A stretch of 64,000 nucleotides of DNA, from the NCBI RefSeq assembly GCF_902713615.1, contig NC_052146.1, positions 53,498,388 to 53,562,387 on the forward strand. The letters are read 5' to 3'. Shown here piece by piece: positions 3,071 to 57,176 of the stretch. Within the stretch, counting starts at the first letter, position 1. Every line of letters starts with the position of its first letter. Under the pieces are notes generated by a model. It was not told the DNA's origin. It saw only the letters and a program-made list of their open reading frames with translations, and did no database searches. Both the position numbers and the translations under genes were made by a program. This DNA comes from Scyliorhinus canicula. Lineage: Eukaryota.

Positions 3071-4249
3071 GGGTCTGGATTCTCCGATTTTGAGGATCCG
3101 GGATGTTTTACGTGGAGAAAAGCAGTGCCGCCCGGATGGGATGAGCAGATCTTGCATTGTGAGGGAGAGGATGGCCCTTGGATGGACTTTGGTAGCAACT
3201 CTCTTAAGGAGTTACCCCCTTGTCCCACTGCAAGGTCCACTGCATCAGAGCCACGCTGGTCAGGACCAGTGGTGTTTCTCACCCAGTTGACTCCCTGCCC
3301 AGAGGACAGGAGAATCATGCAGGCCCAGAGAATATGGAGCCCAGCCTGTGAAGTGGATGCAAATGGGTCATTAAGACCCATTGTATCCTCTCACTGGTGT
3401 GTGGGCGGGAGCAATGATCTGATGTCAGTGGGAGGGGGCCAGTGTATCAGAAATGGATCAGCGCCGGCCGATTTCTCCCCAACGCTGCATTCTCCGCCTG
3501 ATCGGGATTTTGCTACATGAGTGCGGCCTTATCCGGGATCTTGGATTCATGTCGCATTACATTGGTGCCTGTGCTAGCCCATTAGAATGTCCTGAATCGC
3601 TCCAGGACTGGCACTGCTTTCAGGGCCATAGAATCCCGTGATTCAATCCCAGCATCAGCACTTCGGGCGTAATTCTCCGCTCCCGGGAAAAATCGGGAGG
3701 GCTGTGGTGAACTCGGCTGAGTTTAACGATGGCCTCGGAGGCCTCCTTGCCCCCTATTCTCCCCTCCCGGCGTGGCTAGGAGCGGCGCTCCATAACTCTC
3801 GGCCGCGGGGGTATCGGGGGCCGTCTTTCCCCTCAGCCGCCCCGCAAGACGTGGCGGCTTGATCTTGCGGGGCGGTGGAGGGGAAATTGTGCGTCCGATT
3901 TGGACGCCGGCCCAACGATTGGTGGGCACCGATTGCGGGCCTGTCCCCTCCCGAGCACAGTCGTGGTGCTCTTTTCTTGCTAGGCCACCTATAGGCCCCA
4001 AACGGGCTTCTCACTCCCGTTGCATGACGGCAGCGACCAGGTGTGTTTGCCGCTGTCGTGAAACAGCCGCGAACGGCAGGCCGCTCGGCCCATCCGGGTC
4101 GGAGAATCGCCGTTCGCCGTGAAAAACGATTCTTCCGAGCGGGGGGTGGGGGGGAGAATCGCGGGGGGCGCCAGGGGGGGCGTGAAATTTGCCGGGTGGC
4201 CCTCCCGCGAGAATTGCGCCCTTAGTCTCTGCAATGGCAAATCCAGCCC
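3071..4249. mobile_element. PIF/Harbinger-type MITE (outer) hosting a nested MITE
   Basis: Ends GGGTCTGGATTCTCC ... GGCAAATCCAGCCC match the TIR family found throughout the window. Confidence 0.55.
3665..4221. mobile_element. PIF/Harbinger-type MITE (nested, CpG-rich)
   Basis: TIRs GGGCGTAATTCTC / GAGAATTGCGCCC; 3-bp flanks TTC/TTA; internally similar to the 9265-10531 MITE. Confidence 0.85.
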
Positions 4250-9264: not shown

Positions 9265-10531
9265 GGGCACGATTCTCCGATGCCGCACGGCATCGGGAAA
9301 GCCGTCAAGAACTCGGCCGAGTTTCACGACGGCGTTGGAGGCCGCTCCTCGCACCCTGTCTCCCCCCCCCCCCCCAGGGGGCTAGGAGCAGCGTTGTGAG
9401 AAACTCGGCCGCCGGGCTTGCTACAAAGCGGCGCGCCAAGAATGACGCGACGGCGGCGCTTAAGTGACGTCAGCCGTGCACGCGCAGGTTGGCCGGCTCC
9501 AACCCACGCGTGCGCGGTTACCGTCTTCCCCTCCGCTGCCCCACAAGACATGGTGGCTTGATCTTGCGGGGCAGCGGAGGGGAAAGAGTGCGTCTCTTAG
9601 AGATGCCGGGCCGACGATCGGTGGGCACCGATCGCGGGCCAGTCAACTCCCGAGCACGCCCGTGGTGCTTGTTCTTATCTCCACCCCCCACAGGCCACAA
9701 ACTTACCTTTTGATGTGACCATCAGTTGACACGACATGCAGTTGGAAGTGAACAGTGGTTTTAATGATCTTACAATGGAGCCTGCCTGTGCCGAGATGAA
9801 CTGGCAGGCAGGCTCAGACTGCCAGGCTTTATACTTCCGGTTAGTGGGAGGAGCCATGTGCGGAGCCATAGGCGGAGCCAAGTGTGGAGCCCAGTACAAA
9901 CTCCTCATCTCCCCCTAGGGGCAGAGCCACGCAACTGCTCGTATACCAAGCTTACCTGTCTGGCTGTGAGAGTAATCAATCAGAGAGTCTGCATTTTGGG
10001 TGCCCCCTTACCCTTGGGGCCTCTTACCTTCGCGTGGAGTGTTTCATTGTAAGTGAGTCAGTAAGTAATTCATTTGGGTCTGATTGATGAGCATGCCTTA
10101 AAAGTGCCTGAAGGTGTCACACAGAGATCAGCAGCATTGGTGGGTTTACAGTTGGTGGCACCCTGTGCTGATCATTTTTGGTGCAGCTCGCCGCCCCTGC
10201 CCCCTTCTTCCCTCCACCTGCCCCCTTCTTCCCTCCACAGCGAGTAAATCACAGTGTGAATTACACGGACTGTGATTCACCACACCTTTCGCGCTATGTT
10301 CACGCCAGCAGTGACCAGGTGTGGTTGACGCCGGCGTGAACAGGTCGGGAACGGCAGGCCGCTCGACCCATCCGGGCCGGAGAATCGCCGGTCGCCGTGA
10401 AAAACGGCGTGCGGCGATTCCGCGACACGCCATTTTGGGGGGGGGGTGGGAGAATCGCGGGGGGTGCCAGAGCGGCATGTCGTGATTCGCGCGATTCTCC
10501 CACCCCGCGTGGGGAGCGGAGAATCACGCCC
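9265..10531. mobile_element. PIF/Harbinger-type MITE in Gypsy pol, containing a nested solo LTR
   Basis: TIRs GGGCACGATTCTCC / GGAGAATCACGCCC; perfect 3-bp TSD ACA; removing it restores Gypsy INTQGLHTMEEKVK. Confidence 0.92.
9711..10284 (-). mobile_element. Solo LTR with internal foreign (locally templated) patches
   Basis: TG...CA ends (TGATGTGA...TTCACCACA); perfect 5-bp TSD CCTTT at 9706-9710 and 10285-10289; TATA-like GTATAAAG and ATTAAA on the minus strand. Confidence 0.85.
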
Positions 10532-12194
10532 ACAGGGTTACACACCATGGAAGAAAAGGTCAAGGTGATAAAATAGGTGCCTTCTCCTATCAGTTTTGTA
10601 GAATGATAAACTACTGTAGACAGTTTTTACCCAACTTATCGACTTTACTGGTTCCCTTACATATTCTGTTTAACGAAACACCTTTTTTGGTCTTAGAATG
10701 CTCCCCAGGAGGAAGCGTTCAACAAAGAAAAACAATTGCTGCATTCCTCAAACCTGTTAGTACACCTCAACCCATCTAAAGAACAGATAGTGACATACTG
10801 CACCTCTCCATATGGCGTTGCTGAGATGTCGACCCATGACATGAACGACAGCTCTTAAAGAGCGATAGGGTGTGTGTCAAGAAGTTACATGGAAAACACC
10901 TTCCCATTGTTACTGACCACAAATTGCTTTTGGGCCTCTTCAAAGAGGACAAGGCTTTCATACCGATAGCCTCAGCAAGAATTCAACAATGAGCATTAAT
11001 TATGTCTGCCGACAAAAATACTTTCAAACACTGACTTGGGATGCACATAGCGAATGAGGATGGCCATAGCTACTTTCCCTTGTGAGAAAGTGTCACATGT
11101 ACTCTTGTATCCCTAGAAATTGTCTTGACATTAGAGTTTCTGGACACATTAGCAGTCTGTGTGAAGCACATTGGAATCTGGATTTAATGGGAGCTGCAGA
11201 GTTTTTACGTGTACTCAGAAACCCAGGAGTGGTGGGCACTCTTGTTGTGTGACATCTGTGCCTGACCGGAACCCTAGGCTTGGTGGCGGTGAGTAGCTGC
11301 TGGCCTCTGATTGGCCTGGAGATTGGGAATTTCAATACCGGGCGGGGCCATTGGTGGAACTTAACTTGATTTGAGCAGGCTTCCCCCACTGAACCAACAC
11401 ATGCTTCCCCATTGGTTCTCCAACCAGTAGACGAGATCCTTGTCGGCATCACAAAATTCAGCCCTTCAGTGGGAATGTATGTACTGATTCCACATATACA
11501 TCTTCACAAAAATTGCTTCTGCACATTACTTGAGTGATAAACCTGCAGGTCAAGGATGGATTTACAATGAAACACTCCACGCCAAGGTAAGAGGCCCCAA
11601 GGGTAAGGGTGGCACCCAAAATGCAGACTCTCTGATTGATTACTCTCACAGCCAGTCAGGTACAGACATACATGGAAACCCTGCCCACAATTGTAAAATC
11701 AATTCGTATTCTCAACTGAGGGCGGGACTTATCTGATCTGTTGCAGCTTTTGGCTTTGCTCAGGCGCTATGGAGTCATTCATCCATTTGGAACTACATTG
11801 CCCATGCTGCATGTGGCCGAGCATCTGTGCAATGAGAAGCATCAGTATGGAATCAGGCAGATGTAGCCTGTGGTGCCTGATGGGAACTTGAGAATCAGTG
11901 ATCAAGGGTGGCTGTCACATGGACAGGGTTGAATTTGGAGGTGAGCATCTATAAATCCCAGCCCCCAGTGGCAGGGATTAGGATTGCAGACATTTAAAAC
12001 CCCTCAAACCCATCCCCCGCTTCACCCTCCCATTCCCTCTCCTCCACCTGCAATCCCCCCTTCCATTCCCCTTCACAGGAAATGGTGTGTTTCATTGAAA
12101 ATCCACCCATGCATAACCCAAAGGTTATTTGTATATTCTGATTGAAAAAAACGACTATGGCAATGGTCAAGGTCATCATGAATCAATAATGGAA

Positions 12195-15656: not shown

Positions 15657-16003
15657 GGGCAGCACGGTAGCATGGTGGTTAGCATAAATGCTTCACAGCT
15701 CCAGGGTCCCAGGTTCGGTTCCCGGCTGGGTCACTGTCTGTGCGGAGTCTGCACGTCCTCCCCCTTTGTGCGTGGGTTTCCTCCGGGTGCTCCGGTTTCC
15801 TCCCACAGTCCAAAGATGTGCGGGTTAGGTGGATTGGCCATGCTAAATTGCCCGTAGTGTCCTAAAAAGTAAGGTTAAGGGGGGGGGGGTTGTTGGGTTA
15901 CGGGTATAGGGTGGATACGTGGGGTTGAGTAGGGTGATCATTGATCGGCACAACATTGAGGGCCGAAGGGCCTGTTCTGTGCTGTACTGTTCTATGTTCT
16001 ATG
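15657..16003 (+). mobile_element. HE1-like V-SINE, young full-length (CR1-type tail)
   Basis: Full tRNA head and V-core; tail CGGCACAACAT.GAGGGCCGAAGGGCCTGTTCTGTGCTGTACTGTTCTATG matches the CR1 3' end at ~36590-36641. Confidence 0.95.
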
Positions 16004-16793: not shown

Positions 16794-17186
16794 GAATCCA
16801 TGTACAGTATTTATAAATAACATGGCAAGCTTTGACATGGTTAGGGACTGGGAAAGATAAGCTTGGATTTCAACAAGGCAATTATTCAAACAGGTGTGTT
16901 TTTATGCTGATCAAAATGTGTATTTTCTTGCGGTTGGCCTTCGGGTCCTGGGAGGGCAGAGGCGGGGGCGGCGAGCTGCACCAAAAATGATCAGCACAGG
17001 GTGCCACCAACTGTAAATCCACCAATGCTGCTGATCTCTGTGTGACACCTTCAGGCACTTTTAAGGCATGCTCATCAATCAGACCCAAATTCAATGCTTA
17101 AGCCAGATTTTCAAACAGGTGTGATTTATTACAACCGCACCCATTAAGCAGCTATTTTCACCCACTCATCAAAATAATTCTCACTT

Positions 17187-28391: not shown

Positions 28392-28619
28392 GATTCCCGA
28401 GGAAAGCTGTGATGAAGCTTTTGCAGCTAGATCAGAAACTTTCCAGTTGCCAACTGTGACTAAACCTGTCCCTGGAAGTTTAGTCACATCACTCATCAGC
28501 CATAACATCCACGCTTGTGACACACTGCCTTCATAAAACATAGAACCTTACAGCGCAGTACGGGCCCTTCGGCCCTCGATGTTGCGCCGACCTGTGAAAC
28601 CATCTGAAGCCTATCTGAC

Positions 28620-31480
28620 CTACACTATTCCATTTTCATCCATATGTCTATCCAGTGACCACTTAAATGCCCTTAAAGTTGGCGAGTCTACTACTGTTGC
28701 AGGCAGGGCGTTCCACACCCCGACTACTCTCTGAGTAAAGAAACTGCCTCTGACATCTGTCCTATATCCACCACCCCTCAAGTTAAAGCTATGTCCCCTC
28801 GTGTTGGTCATCACCATCCGAGGAAAGAGACTCTCACTGTCCACCCTATCTAACCCTCTGACTATCTTATATGTCTCTATTAAGTCACCTCTCAGCCTTC
28901 TCCTCTCTAACGAAAACACCTCAAGTCCCAGAGCCTTTCCTCATAAGACCTTCCCTCCATACCAGGCAACATCCTAGTAAATCTCCTCTGAACACTTTCC
29001 AAAGCTTCCACATCCTTCCTATAATGTGGTGACCAGAACTGCACGCAGTACTCCAGGAGCGGCCGCACCAGAGTTATGTACAGCTGCAGCATGACCTTGT
29101 GGCTCCGAAACTCAATCCCCCTACTGATGAAGGCTAGCACACCATATGCCTTCTTAACAGCCCTATTAACCTGGGTGGCAACTTTCAGGGATTTATGTAC
29201 CTGGATGCCGAGATCTCTCTGTTCATCTACACTACCAAGAATCTTGCCATTAGCCCAGTACTCTGCATTCCTGTTACTCCTTCCAAAGTGAATCACCTCA
29301 CACTTTTCCGCATTAAACTCCATCTGCCACCTCACAGCCCAGCTCTGCAGCTTATCTATGTCCCTCTGTATCCTATAACATCGTTCAGCACTATCCACAA
29401 CTCCACCGACCTTCGTGTCATCAGCAAATTTACTAACCCATCCTTCTACACCCTCTTCCAGGTCATTTATAAAAATGACAAACAGCAGTGGCCCCAAAAC
29501 AGATCCTTGCGGTACACCACTAGTAACTGAACTCTAGGATGAACATTTGCCATCAACCACCACCCTCTGTCTTCTTTCAGCTAGCCAATTACTGATCCAA
29601 ACCGCTAAATCACCTTCAATCCCATACTTCCTTATTTTCTGCAATAGCCTACCGTGGGGAACCTTATCAAACGCCTTACTGAAATCCATATACACCACAT
29701 CAACCGCTTTACCCTCATCCACCTATTTGATCACCTTCTCAAAAAACTCAATAAGGTTTGTGACGCATAACCTACCCTTCACAAAACCGTGTTGAGTATT
29801 GCTAATCAACTTGTTCTTTTCAAGATGATTATAAACCCTATCTCTTATCACCTTTTCCAACATTTTACCCACAACCGAAGTAAGGCTCACAGGTCTATAA
29901 TTACCAGGGTTGTTTCTACTCCCCTTCTTGAACAAGGGGACAACATTTGATATCCTCCAGTCTTCCGGCACTATTCCTGTCGACAAAGACGACATAAAGA
30001 TCAAGGACAAAGGCTCTGCAATCTCCTCCCTGGCTTCCCAGAGAATCCTTGGGTAAATCCCATCCGGCCCAGGGGACTTATCTATTTTTACACTTTCCAA
30101 AATTGCTAACACCTCCTCCTTGTGAACCTCAATTCCATCTAGCCTGGTCGACTGAGTATTCTCCTCGACAACATTGTCTTTCTCCAGTGTAAACACTGAT
30201 GAAAAATATCCATTTAATGCTTCCCCTATCTCCTTTGATTTCACACACAACTTTCCACTACTATCCGTGATTGGCCCTAATCTTACTCTAGTCATTCTTT
30301 TGTTCCTGATATACCTATAGAAAGCCTTAGGGTTTTCCTTGATCCTATCCGCCAATGACTTTTCGTGTCCTCTCCTCGCTCTTCTTAACTCTCCCTTTAG
30401 GTCCTTCCTGGCTAACTTGTAACTCTCAAGTGCCCTAACTGAGCCTTCATGTCTCATCCTAACATAAGCCTTCTTCTTCCTCTTGACAAGTGCTTCAACT
30501 TCCTTAGTAACCCACGGTTCCCTTGCTCGACAACTTCCTCCCTGCCTGACAGGTACATACTTATCAAGAACACGCAGTAGCTCTTCCTTGAAAAAGCTCC
30601 ACATTTCGATTGTACCCATCCCCTGCAGTTTCCTTCCCCATCCTATACATCCTAAATCTTGCCGACTAGCATCATAATTGCCTTTCCCCCAGCTATAATT
30701 CTTGCCTTGCGGTATATACCTATCCCTGCCCATTGCTAAAGTAAACATAACCGAATTGTGATCACTATCACCAAAGTGCTCACCTACATCTAAATCTGAC
30801 ACCTGGCCGGGTTCATTACCCAGTACCAAATCCAATGTGGCCTCGCCCCTTGTTGGCCTGTCTACATACTGTGTCAGAAAACCCTCCTGCACACACTGCA
30901 CAAAAACTGACCCATCTATAGTATTCGAACTATAGCATTTCCAGTCAATATTTGGAAAGTTAAAGTCCCCCATAACAACTACCCTGTTACTCTCGCTCCT
31001 GTCGAGAATCATCTTTGCAATCTTTTCCTCCACATCTCTGGAACTATTCGGAGGTCTATAGACAACTCCCAACAGGGTGACCTCTCCTCTCCTGTTCCTA
31101 ACCTTGGCCCATACTACCTCAGTAGACGAGTCCTCAAACGTCCTTTCAACCGCCGTAATACTTTCCTTGATTAACAATGCCACACCCCCCCCCCCCCTCT
31201 TTTACCATCTTCCCTGTTCTTACAGAAACATCTAAATCCTGGAACCTGCAACAACCATTCCTGTCCCTGCTCTACCCATGTCTCCGAAATCGGCACAACA
31301 TCGAGATCCCAGGTACCAACCCATGCTGCAAGCTCACCCACCTTATTCCGGATGCTCCTAGCGTTGAAGTAGACACACTTCAAACTAGCGTCTTGCTTGC
31401 CGGTGCCCTCTTTCGAACTTTTAACCCTATCCGTGACCTCACTACTCTCAACATCCTGTACACTGGGACTACAATTTAGG
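28620..31480 (-). pseudogene. CR1 ORF2 (APE endonuclease + reverse transcriptase), disrupted
   Basis: YFNARSI, GDFNFP, SDHN, KSPGPDG, QHGFVKG, DFSKAFDKV, FADD. Frameshifts at ~31185 and ~28915; premature stops at ~29723 and ~29534. Confidence 0.95.
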
Positions 31481-49323: not shown

Positions 49324-50355
49324 AGAACATAGAACATAGAACACTACAGCGCAGTACGGGCCCTTCGGCCCTCGATGTAGCGCCGACCTGTGAAACCATC
49401 TGAAGCCTATCTGACCTACACTATTCCATTTTCATCCATATGTCTATCCAGTGGCCACTTAAATGCCCTTAAAGTTGGCGAGTCTACTACTGTTGCAGGC
49501 AGGGCGTTCCACACCCCTACTACTCTCTGAGTAAAGAAACTGCCTCTGACATCTGTCCTATATCTATCACCCCTCAATTTAAAGCTATGTCCCCTCGTGT
49601 TGGTCATCACAATCCGAGGAAAAAGACTCTCACTGTCCACCCTATCTAACCCTCTGACTATCTTATATGTCTCTATTAAGTCACCTCTCAGCCTTCTCCT
49701 CTCTAACGAAAACAACCTCAATTCCCTGAGCCTTTCCTCGTAAGACCTTCCCTCCATACCAGGCAACATCCTAGTAAATCTCCTCTGAACCCTTTCCAAA
49801 GCTTCCACATCTTTCCTATAATGTGGTGACCAGAACTGCACGCAGTACTCCAGGTGCGGCCACACCAGAGTTATGTACAGCTGCAGCATGACCTTGTGGC
49901 TCCGAAACTCAATCCCTCTGCTGATAAAGGCTAGCACACCATATGCCTTCTTAACAGCCCTATTAACCTGGGTGGCAACTTTCAGGGATTTATGTACCTG
50001 GATGCCGAGATCTCTCTGTTCATCTACACTACCAAGAATCTTGCCATTAGCCCAGTACTCTGCATTCCTGTTACTCCTTCCAAAGTGAACCACCTCACAC
50101 TTTTCCGCATTAAACTCCATCTGCCACCTCTCAGCCCAGCTCTGCAGCTTATCTATGTCCCTCTGTATCCTATAACATCCTTCAGCACTATCCACAACTT
50201 CACCGACCTTCGTGTCATCTGCAAATTTACTAACCCATCCTTCTACACCCTCTTCCAGGTCATTTATATAAATGACAAACATCAGTGGCCCCAAAACAGA
50301 TCCTTGCGGTACACCACTAGTAACTGAACTCCAGGATGAACATTTGCCATCAACC
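49324..50355 (-). mobile_element. 5'-truncated young CR1, same family as 28532-32840
   Basis: Near-identical to 28532-29560; open RT C-terminal frame (GVPQGSVLGP..FADD..) to stop at 49416. Confidence 0.97.
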
Positions 50356-50502
50356 TGTTCTGCTACTCTTCCACCAGTAGGATAGACCCCAAGGAATTTC
50401 TGATCATCACATAAGCTCTGAGATTGCTTAGACTTCCAAGAACCCAACGGTAGTTGACAAGTCAAATTGAAATTAACAATGGGGATTCAATTTGAAATTG
50501 AA

Positions 50503-51094: not shown

Positions 51095-51440
51095 AACATA
51101 GAACATAGAACAGTACAGCACAGAACAGGCCCTTCGGCCCTCAATGTTGTGCCGAGCCATGATCACCCTACTCAAACCCACATATCCACCCTATACCCGT
51201 AACCCAACCCCCCCCCTTAACCTTACATTTATTAGGACACTACGGGCAATTTAGCATGGCCAATCCACCTAACCCGCACATCTTTGGACTGTGGGAGGAG
51301 GCCGGAGCACCCGGAGGAAACCCACGCACACAGGGGGAGGACGTGCAGACTCCACACAGACAGTGACCCAGCCGGGAATCGAACCTGGGACCCTGGAGCT
51401 GTGAAGCATTTATGCTAACCACCATGCTACCCTGCTGCCC
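51095..51440 (-). mobile_element. HE1-like V-SINE, young full-length
   Basis: Near-identical reverse complement of 15657-16003. Confidence 0.95.
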
Positions 51441-52991: not shown

Positions 52992-55900
52992 AATGGAGGA
53001 CGGTTCGCAGCTGGGAGGGTTCCTAGCCTGGGGAGGAAGGGAGGGGGGGGAAGGGGAATACCGGGTTGCTGCTGGTAGGGTCAGGAAGGAGCTAGTGGGG
53101 GCCGGGGGGACAGAGGTGAGGTGTTGTCGCTGTGGGGACTGGGTCGGGCAGGGGGTGCTGGCCTGGGGCTGGCAGTCGACGGGCTATGGCTAGTCGACGG
53201 GGGAGGGGGGCGGGACGCCCTCTGATCCGGTTGGTCACCTGGAATGCGAGAGGGTTGAATTGGCCGGTGAAGCGGTCGAGGATACTTGCTCATCTGAAGG
53301 GGCTAAAGGCAGATGTGGCAATGCTTCAGGAGATCCACCTGAAGGTGGCGGACCAGGTCCGCCTGAGGAAGGGATGGGTGGGGCAGGTTTTCCACTCTGG
53401 GTTGGATGTGAAGAACCGGGGAGTGGCGATTCTGGTGGGGAAAAATGTGTTGTTTGAGGCATCAGAGGTGGTAGGTATGTTATGGTTAGGGGCAGGCAAC
53501 AAGGAGAGAAAGTGGTACTTGCTAGTGTGAATGCCCCAAATTGGGACGATGCGGGCTTTATGATGCGTATGTTGGGACGGGTCCCGGATCTGGAGACGGG
53601 AGGTCTGATCATGGGGGGGACTTTAATATGGTGTTGGATCCTTCACTGGATCAGTCCAGCTCTAGGACGGGTAGGAGGCCGGCGGCGGCCAAGGTACTGA
53701 GAGGGTTTATGGACCAGATGGGTGGGGTGGATCCATGGAGGTTTGTGAGGCCGAGGGCATGCGAGTACTCTTTCTTCTCCCACGTACATAGGGTCTACTC
53801 TCGGATAGACTTCTTCGTGGTGAGTAGGGGACTGATTCCGAGAGTGGAGGAGGCCGAGTTTTCGGCCATTGCAATCTCCGACCATGCGCCGCATTGGATG
53901 GAGTTGGAGATGGGGGAGGTGCGGGACCAGCGCCCGTTGTGGCGGTTGGATGTGGGGTTGTTGGCGGAGGAGGAGGTGTGTAGGAGGGTCCGGGCAAGTA
54001 TTGAGGGGTACCTCGAGGTGAATGATACGGGGGAGGTTCAGGTGGGCATGGTCTGGGAAGCCCTGAAGGCAGTGGTTCGTGGGGAGCTGATATCCATCCG
54101 GGCACACAGGGAGAGGAGTGAGAGGGATAGACTGGTGGGAAAGATGCTGGAGGTGAACAGGAGGTATGCAGAGGCACCAGAGGAGGGACTGTTGGGGGAG
54201 AGGCACAGCCTGCAGGCTAAATTTGATTTGCTGGCCACTGGAAAGGCGGAGGCACAGTGGAGGAAGGCACAAGGGGCAGTGTACGAACATGGTGAAAAGG
54301 CGAGTAGGATGCTGGCTCATCAGCTCCGCAAGCGGGATGCGGCTAAGGAAATTGCTGGAGTGAGAGACAAGAGTGGGAATGTGGTGCGGAAGGGGGTAGA
54401 GGTGAATGAGGTCTTCAAGGACTTTTACGGGGAACTGTACCGGTCGGAGCCAACGGGGTAGAGGAAGGAAATGGAGAGGTTCCTCAACGGGCTTTCTTTC
54501 CCGAAGGTGCAGGAGGAGAAGGTGGAGGGGTTGGGTGCGCCGATTGAGCTGGAGGAGCTAGTTAAGGGGATCGGGCAGATGCAGTCAGGGAAGGCACCGG
54601 GGCCGGATGGGTTCCCGGTGGAATTTTATAAAAAGTTTGTGGACCTAGTGGGCCCCTTGCTGGTGCGAACACTCAATGAAGCGTGGGAAGGGGGGACTTT
54701 GCCCCCGACGATGTCGCGGGCGCTGATCTCGTTAATTTTAAAGAGGGACAAGGACCCCCAGCAGTGTGGTTCATACAGGCCCATATCTCTCCTCAACGTG
54801 GATGCTAAGGTGCTGGCAAAAATCCTGGCCACCAGGATAGAGGACTGTGTGCCAGGGGTGGTGCACGAGGACCAGACAGGTTTTGTGAAGGGAAGGCAAC
54901 TGAACACGAATGTGCGGAGATTGTTGAATGTCATCATGATGCCGGCGATTGAGGGGGAGGCAGAGATAGTGGTGGCGCTGGATGCGGAGAAGGCCTTCGA
55001 TAGAGTGGAGTGGGGGTACCTATGGGAGGTGTTGGGGAGGTTTGGATTTGGTGAAGGGTTCATTAGATGGGAAGGCTGCTATATGAGGCCCCGATGGCAT
55101 GCGTGGCCACAAATAGGAGGAGGTCGGAGTACTTCCGGCTTTACCGAGGGACCAGGCAGGGTTGCCCCTTGTCCCCCTTGTTGTTTGCACTGGCAATCGA
55201 GCCGCTGGCGATGGTGTTGAAGGATTCAGAGAGGTGGAGAGGCTTGGTGCGAGGTGGGGAGGAACATAGGGTGTCGTTGTATGCCGATGACCTGTTACTG
55301 TATGTGGCGGACCCGGTGGGAGGGATGCCGGGGGTGATGGAGTTGCTAGCTGAGTTTGGGACCTTTTCAGGTTATAAATTAAATTTAGGCAAGAGTGAGG
55401 TGTTTGTGGTGCACCCTGGAGACTAGGAGGAAGGAATTGGTAGGCTCCCACTTAGGCGGGCAGGGGAGAGCTTTAGGTACCTGGGGGTGCAGGTGGCCAG
55501 GGACTGGGGGACTCTTCACAAGCATAATTTCACCAGACTTGTAGATCAGATGGAGGAGGAGTTCAAGAGGTGGGACATGCTGCCATTATCGTTGGCGGGG
55601 AGGGTACAGTCCGTCAAAATGACGGTGCTTCCGAGGTTCTTGTTCCTCTTTCAGTGCCTGCCCATCTTTATCTCCAGGGCCTTCTTTAGGAGAGTGACTA
55701 GCAGTATTTTGAGCTTTGTGTGGGCACATGGGACTCCGAGAGTGAAGAGGGTGTTCCTGGAGCGAGGGAGTGATAGAGGCGGGCTAGCGCTGCCCAACCT
55801 TCTGGGGTACTATTGGGCGGCCAATGTGTCAATGGTGCATAAATGGGTGATGGAGGGGGGAGGGGCAGCGTGGAAAAGAATGGAGATGGCGTCATGTAGA

Positions 55901-57176
55901 GGTACGAGCCTGGGTGCCATGGTGACGGCGCCGTTGCCGCTCTCCCCTAAGAGGTTTACCACGAGCCCGGTGGTGGTGGCAACCCTGAGAATCTGGGAAC
56001 AGTGGAGACGGCATCGGGGGGAAACAGGGGGCTCGATGGAGGCTCCACTGGGTGGCAACCATCGGTTCGTCCCGGGGAATAAGGATGGGGGATTTAGGGG
56101 GTGGCAAAGGGCGGGCATCAGCAAATTGAGGGACCTGTTTATTGGCGGGAGGTTTGCGGGCCTGGGGGAACTGGAAGATAAATTTGGCCTTCCCCAGGGG
56201 AACATGTTCAGATACCTGCAGGTAAAGGCGTTTGCTAGGCGACAGGTAGAGGGATTCCCTCTGCTGCCCTCGGGGGGGACGATGGACAGAGTGCTTTCGG
56301 GGGTGTGGGTCGGAGAGGGGAAGGTGTCTGACATCTATAAGGTAATGCAGGAGGTGGAGGAGTCGTCAGTGGAGGAGCTGAAGGCTAAATGGGAGGAGGA
56401 ACTCGGGGAGCAGATAGAGGACGGGACTTGGGCGGATGCCTTGGAGAGAGTCAACTCTTCCTCCTCATGTGCGAGGCTTAGTCTCATCCAATTTAAGGTG
56501 CTGCACCGGGCCCACATGTCCGGGACTAGGATGAGTAGGTTCTTTGGGGGTGAGGACAGGTGCACCAGATGTTCGGGGGAGTCCAGCGAACCACGCCCAT
56601 ATGTTCTGGGCATGCCCAGCACTGGAAGAATTCTGGAAGGGGGTGGCGGGGACGGTGTCGAGGGTGGTTGGATCCAGGGTCAAACCAGGGTGGGGACTCG
56701 CGATGTTTGGAGTTGCGGTAGAGCCGGGAGTGCAGGAGGCAAAAGAGGCCGGTGTCCTGGCCTTTGCATCCCTAGTAGCCCGACAAAGGATTCTGCTACA
56801 GTGGAAGGATGCGAGGCCCCCAAGTGTGGAGACCTGGATCAGTGACATGGTGGGATTTATAAAATTGGAAAGGGTCAAATTTGCCCTGAGGGGATCAATA
56901 CAAGGGTTCTATAAACGATGGCAGCCTTTTCTGGACTTCCTGGCTCAAAGATAGGTATCTCGGTCAATAGCAGCAGCAACCCGGGGGGGGGGGGTGTTCC
57001 TTATTGTAGTGTCTATTCTGTAACTTTATATTGTGTTAATTTGCGTTGTTGTCAAAATGCTGTGTTGTTCATGGAGGTGGGGCGAATATTTATGATTGTT
57101 AATATTATTGTTATTTTACTATGGTGCGTTATTGTTGTATAAATTCAAAATTTTTCAATAAAAATTATTTTAAAAA
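52992..57176 (+). mobile_element. L1-clade LINE, 5' truncated just upstream of ORF2
   Basis: 16-bp TSD AAACACACA(C/T)AAATTC (52976-52991 and 57177-57192); AATAAA and A-tail at the 3' end. Confidence 0.96.
53186..56954 (+). pseudogene. L1-clade ORF2 (APE + RT + C-terminal CCHC), disrupted
   Basis: VTWNARGLN, LQE.H, GGDFN, SRIDFF, ISDH, KAPGPDGF, LDAEKAFDRV, RQGCPLSP, YADD, C..C..HMFWACP. Stops at ~54459 and ~55424; several frameshifts. Confidence 0.95.

Follow-up and report, generated by a model that had tools for sequence, protein, structure and literature searches.

Two inverted copies of nearby DNA inside a solo LTR-like repeat of a catshark, probably a single repair scar from serial template switching

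How did two separate pieces of neighboring DNA come to lie side by side, both inverted, inside one mobile repeat? This question is raised by a locus in a 64-kb stretch of the Scyliorhinus canicula genome (the window; all coordinates are window positions, and all features are given on the + strand). Here, an insert resembling a solo LTR carries an inverted copy of one nearby segment (patch A, from donor A), a short filler, an inverted copy of a second segment (patch B, from donor B), and a tandem duplication. A sequence-only reading of the window had reported these inverted copies, the filler, and the duplication. Comparison of the window with itself by blastn and base-by-base alignment showed this description to be correct in every particular and the matches to be far beyond chance. 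We consider it probable, at about 0.72, that the patches are a single inherited repair scar from serial template switching. Read evidence was taken from Logan contigs of four runs, aligned to 9500–10500 at 85% likeness. Run X1 represents sample S1, runs X3 and X6 represent sample S2 from another study, and run X9 represents another species. The read evidence consists of collapsed contigs throughout, and copy numbers derived from it are approximate.

The insert spans 9711–10284, has TG..CA ends, and is flanked by a 5-bp CCTTT duplication at 9706–9710 and 10285–10289. It interrupts a repeat that belongs to a very abundant catshark family. The left part of this host repeat (9292–9710), whose final five bases are the target site CCTTT, had a word depth of 10^4–10^5 in reads and was 72–79% identical to 3692–4003 in the self-comparison of the window. 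The right part (10285–10540) opens with the second CCTTT copy. An uninterrupted copy of the host repeat is present in the window at 3821–4174. In the self-comparison, 9521–9702 matched 3821–4003, and 10308–10470 matched 4030–4174. The empty-site paralog at 4004–4029 is 26 bases long, equal to 8 + 23 − 5 at the host locus. TG..CA ends, a target duplication of 4–6 bp, and an empty site of matching length, all found here, are the marks of a solo LTR. The 5′ part of the insert (9711–9955) starts with TG, contains three GGAGCC motifs and a TATA-like box, and had a read depth of 10^3–10^5. Its final three bases, TAC, are also found in donor A. Contigs from other family copies start at 9710/9711 and reach 9952–9955. 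The 3′ part (10247–10284) holds a hairpin at 10247–10277, ends with CA, and had a read depth of 10^3–10^4 from 10248. Past 10284, the flanks of other LTR copies diverge in the read contigs. Judged from sequence features, 9711–10284 is likely a solo LTR that is multicopy with shared ends. The host repeat itself (9292–9702, 10308–10540, and 3692–4174) reached word depths of up to 4 × 10^5 in read contigs and occurs in the second species too. It contains palindromes at 9526–9584 and 9600–9649, plus repeated GGAGAATCGC motifs.

Patch A occupies 9953–10052 and is an inverted copy of donor A (11562–11662) with 97% identity. Self-blastn aligned 9953–10052 with 11662–11562 at 97.0% over 101 columns (E 1e-41) and found no second match to this stretch anywhere in the 64-kb window. 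Base-by-base alignment located the differences as mismatches at 9959 and 10031 and a 1-base gap at 10005. X6 record 22 (9935–10101) crosses patch A with 0 differences from the window, so all three differences between patch A and donor A are real in the second sample. X1 record 6 (9919–10201) crosses the patch as well. Donor A is unique sequence that lies 1312 bases (1.3 kb) beyond the right edge of the break and is low copy in reads.

The core of patch B (10072–10197) is an inverted copy of 16965–17090 with 1 mismatch in 126 bases, at 10144. Self-blastn aligned 10072–10215 with 17090–16951 at 95.1% over 144 columns (E 1e-60), and this stretch also gave no second match anywhere in the 64-kb window. 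Similarity to donor B extends raggedly beyond the core, leftward to 10062 and rightward to about 10216. Past 10197, mismatches cluster at 10198, 10202, and 10204–10208, and base-by-base alignment showed substitutions to be concentrated at both ends of the patch. Donor B (16951–17100, with a clean core at 16965–17090) is likewise unique sequence and lies 6701 bases (6.7 kb) beyond the right break edge. On the + strand, it is rich in G at its left end. Patch B and the LTR 3′ part are linked by X6 record 23 (10072–10280) and X3 record 14 (10168–10280). A separate contig of 250 nt, X3 record 13, aligns to 10072–10197 only and then departs from the patch; the donor B locus is therefore seen on its own. 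At position 10144, the assembly has G, and all read contigs (three runs, two samples) have A, which is the donor’s letter. Either an assembly error or a bubble popped towards the donor copy may account for this mismatch.

A 19-base filler (10053–10071) separates the two patches. Its first 9 bases are without template, and 6 of its last 10 agree with donor B. The filler and the end of patch A combine into a 12-base quasi-repeat (GTAAGTGAGTCA / GTAAGTAATTCA). To the right of patch B, an exact 21-bp C/T-rich unit is duplicated in tandem (10197–10238, with units at 10197–10217 and 10218–10238). The duplication starts exactly where clean donor B homology stops, and the unit matches the next 21 donor B bases at 12 positions. 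Allowing up to 3 mismatches, neither the 10053–10071 filler nor the 21-bp unit had a further match in the window. Exact words of at least 9 bases from the fillers and the unit gave chance-level matches only within 5–22 kb; one 9-mer recurs in patch A at 10001, with p roughly 0.1 by estimate. The duplication is gap-free in the second sample (X6 record 23). That sample has C>T at 10231 and 10241, within and just past the duplication, and one contig of the first sample has small indels at 10215–10222. The duplication region may be polymorphic. A short filler (10239–10246) precedes the point where the LTR resumes, and its limit is uncertain since LTR copies differ there. The joints of other copies fall at 10250–10254, and their letters just upstream are unlike those of the window.

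At the left junction, TAC is common to the LTR and to the start of donor A read in reverse, giving a 3-base microhomology. The LTR’s own sequence ends in TAC, because the joints of other copies reach 9955. At the middle junction, CATTG is common to the donor A end (…CATTGTAA) and the donor B start (…AAGCATTGAA…). This junction is not a simple join, as 9 untemplated bases are followed by 10 poorly copied ones. At the right junction, clean copying ends at 10197, up to 8 filler bases intervene, and the LTR restarts at about 10247. The donor sequence reaching this junction ends in a G-rich + strand run. Microhomology is clear at one junction only, and the rest are blurred by filler and by about 10–15% divergence among LTR copies. 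The hairpin at 10247–10277 has 9–12 bp, a DNA fold energy of −8.9 kcal/mol, and a z of −3.3, and its foot adjoins the right junction of the patch. This hairpin at the LTR 3′ end may have acted as a stalling site. Predicted folding at the donor limits was otherwise not above that of shuffles.

Summed word depth was 10^3 to 2 × 10^5 over 9738–9941 and 10^3–10^4 over 10248–10281, whereas it was 3–17 over 9976–10213, which covers the patches. Single contigs at the locus had depths of 3.4–7, placing the patches in about one to three contigs. This depth fits two copies of each patch sequence. Because donor-derived reads would fall on the patches at the 85% threshold, the donors are low copy too and therefore not transposable elements. 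The expectation that patches and donors are not multicopy was thereby upheld. The patches were also expected to be foreign to the LTR family, and this was found to be so. Other LTR copies jump from 9952–9955 to 10250–10254 with 23–28 other letters between, and this patch-less joint pattern was seen in the second species as well as in three runs. A normal copy thus measures about 300 bp. In the window copy, about 24 LTR bases are replaced by about 295, with the pre-event state taken from other family copies and not from this locus. In the second species (X9), the LTR family and the host repeat are present, and its contigs cover neither patches nor donors. Contigs of two samples from two studies span all of the LTR/A, A/B, and B/duplication/LTR junctions (X1 record 6, X6 records 22 and 23, and X3 record 14), and read support for the junctions is thus in place.

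The sequence-only reading had proposed a multi-template repair insertion from local DNA, naming polymerase theta end joining together with MMBIR/FoSTeS. The multi-template local insertion stands, and an MMBIR/FoSTeS-type or long-range snap-back process fits; the usual form of Pol theta end joining fits less well. We infer microhomology-mediated template switching, either MMBIR/FoSTeS-type or snap-back, as the favored pathway. The event would begin with a break or stalled fork inside the roughly 300-bp solo LTR-like repeat, beside the small hairpin. A DNA end would then be extended by a poorly processive polymerase over about 150 bases at 16951–17100 and about 100 at 11562–11662, with the two templates copied in either order. 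Both templates would lie to the right of the break on the same chromosome and be copied inverted. The new strand would finally rejoin the other end, with about 24 LTR bases lost and about 295 gained. A fork or strand switch, or snap-back of the right end, would explain why both donors are one-sided and inverted. Low processivity and fidelity of the polymerase would explain the clustered switch-point errors, the filler, and the duplication.

Two routes could produce this outcome. In the first, a break would be followed by long resection, and the 3′ tail of the right end (minus strand) would fold onto its own single strand. The tail would copy 16951 to 17100, release, copy 11562 to 11662, release again, and pair with the left end at TAC. 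In the second, a + strand growing rightward would quit its template at 9955 and prime at GTA on an exposed + strand, for example, the lagging template of a neighboring fork. It would copy 11662 down to 11562, switch to about 17100, copy down to the G-rich run, slip, and return to the LTR. Both routes yield exactly the same product and are indistinguishable here.

Usual Pol theta inserts range in length from a few bases to a few tens and are templated right beside the break. The patches of 100 and about 126–150 bases come instead from 1.3 and 6.7 kb away, beyond such short flanks, and a reach of 6.7 kb by Pol theta would require long resection and snap-back. The likeness to Pol theta end joining (PMC4032859, PMC4490562, PMC4912351) lies in a deletion and insertion at one site, microhomology, and a mixture of templated and untemplated bases; repeated priming can also leave small duplications. 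Pol theta is reported to extend ends using either cis or trans templates (PMC4912351).

MMBIR/FoSTeS events (PMC8421209) share several features with this locus, namely inverted copying from a nearby, retained template, several templates per event, microhomology at a junction, a small recipient loss, and errors near switch points. As in such events, both donors are intact in the window, and the donor B locus forms a separate read contig. Human germline cases of inverted, multi-template templated insertions with microhomology are on record, including events with up to five templates, which were sought only within 100 bp (PMC8421209). The operational definition of MMB-TI likewise places the template within 100 bp (PMC8421209), and the donors here, although inverted, fall outside it at 1312 and 6701 bases. 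The present segments also differ from MMB-TI in their length of 100–150 bases, in their position in a shark repeat, and in being known solely as a variant that is fixed or common. Four-point short-range switches in great apes (PMC7954356) similarly replace a stretch by a nearby reverse complement and leave inverted repeats. Those switches copy a median of 12 and a maximum of 128 bases within one fork (PMC7954356), whereas two successive templates at kilobase distances were used here. Distances of 1.3 and 6.7 kb and segments of 100–150 bases exceed both the usual short-range switches (PMC7954356) and Pol theta inserts. In reach and segment length, the event falls at the long extreme of a known mutation class.

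Two free pieces of nearby DNA, such as flaps, over-replicated DNA, or small circles, could also have been captured and ligated by end joining without template switching. Intact donors and filler-bearing junctions are found in class 2 templated sequence insertions (PMC5110952) as well, and the fillers here have no template in the window. However, capture does not predict the same side and the same inversion for both pieces, which would arise by chance in about 1 of 8 cases by our estimate. The ragged, error-rich ends of patch B and the common TAC fit priming better than ligation, and we regard capture as unlikely. Human class 2 insertions (PMC5110952) resemble this locus further in having a break-site patch whose length runs from tens to hundreds of bases, a microdeletion, microhomology, non-templated bases, and neither target duplication nor poly(A). 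Their sources differ, since those insertions come from distant sites on any chromosome and are thought to be RNA-derived, whereas the donors here are local.

The supposed RNA origin of class 2 insertions (PMC5110952) lends some ground to RNA-templated repair, in which the left end of the break would have been extended by Pol theta or a reverse transcriptase along a local + strand transcript containing both donors. The orientation of the patches agrees with left-end priming on + strand RNA. However, no sampled patch or donor word occurred in about 19 RNA-type contig sets of the species, an observation that covers contigs only and weighs lightly. The patch limits are not at splice sites, patch A has GTA past the only plausible exon end, and poly(A) is absent. 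Taken with these observations, RNA-templated repair appears quite improbable. A circRNA or back-splice product and a spliced retrocopy were rejected: AG/GT is absent from the segment limits on either strand, 19 bases intervene, and patch A overruns the only candidate donor site by 3 bases.

Any two-copy match is symmetrical, and nothing but this symmetry favors the reversed direction, in which the patches would belong to the LTR or to a transducing subfamily and the donors would be secondary copies. Other family copies in two species lack the patches, patch depth is single-copy-like, and two independent partial insertions would be required. A retroviral-type transduction landing less than 7 kb from both of its sources would be a very unlikely coincidence, and we give the reversed direction a very low probability. 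Split repeats of the DIRS/Ngaro type, in which the end of an interval is joined to its start, were rejected as well, because here the patch is found beyond the interval, in inverted orientation and within an unrelated LTR. Gene conversion homogenizing old paralogs was rejected on the basis of a lenient alignment of 9650–10350 with the donor regions, which showed no homology past the patches. A chimeric join of reads from three places has a negligible chance: apart from base 10144, which differs from all read contigs and is the only position where doubt remains, the junctions recur in the second sample and study (X6 records 22 and 23, X3 record 14), and an artefactual structure is refuted.

The insertion had been called recent, for which no support was found. 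The event is common to both samples, and the patches differ from their donors at 3–4 of about 227 clean positions. Divergence from the donors was not significantly different between patch A and patch B (Fisher p 0.32), as expected for one event. These differences give no age, because some may stem from error-prone copying itself. The proposal that the scar records local chromatin contacts is likewise not supported, as one-sided, inverted donors fit a cis mechanism at least as well. The suggested long-range dsRNA, conditional on transcription, found no backing either; transcription was not seen with the sampled patch and donor words in the RNA-type contig sets. Open stretches of 82 and 71 codons in the donors had no Pfam match. 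The repair scar is real, inherited, and of a known mutation kind, with no sign of selection or function.

The locus is a clean, read-confirmed case from a vertebrate germline in which an insertion drew on two templates at kilobase reach. Lost and gained bases are both readable because the recipient belongs to a repeat family. A single locus by itself changes nothing. Across many such events, orientation, side, and distance could separate snap-back or fork switching from fragment capture or 3D contacts. A more general idea is that inverted copies of unique DNA a few kilobases off, always on one side, are a recurrent germline signature in this shark genome; we offer it tentatively and regard it as rather doubtful. 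If true, kilobase resection with snap-back or neighboring-fork switching would be a regular source of inverted repeats, and this locus would be a two-step example recording the path of a DNA end. In principle, the new inverted repeats of 100 and 126 bases might render the region fragile or pair inside a transcript.

Other repeats are present in the window. A LINE remnant at 53541–56845 contains endonuclease and reverse transcriptase fragments in + strand frames, along with a 452-aa open frame without a Pfam match. A 1-kb direct repeat with 97% identity, at 28532–29558 and 49328–50355, has its copies about 21 kb apart. Open frames near it contain endonuclease and reverse transcriptase domains (29723–31183 and 49416–50465), which identifies the 1-kb repeats as a pair of young LINE copies from one family, not as LTRs. 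SINE copies at 15657–16003 and 51097–51440 are inverted relative to each other and 95% identical, whereas other copies in the window are 70–80% alike. The 95% identity of this pair points to a young subfamily or to conversion.
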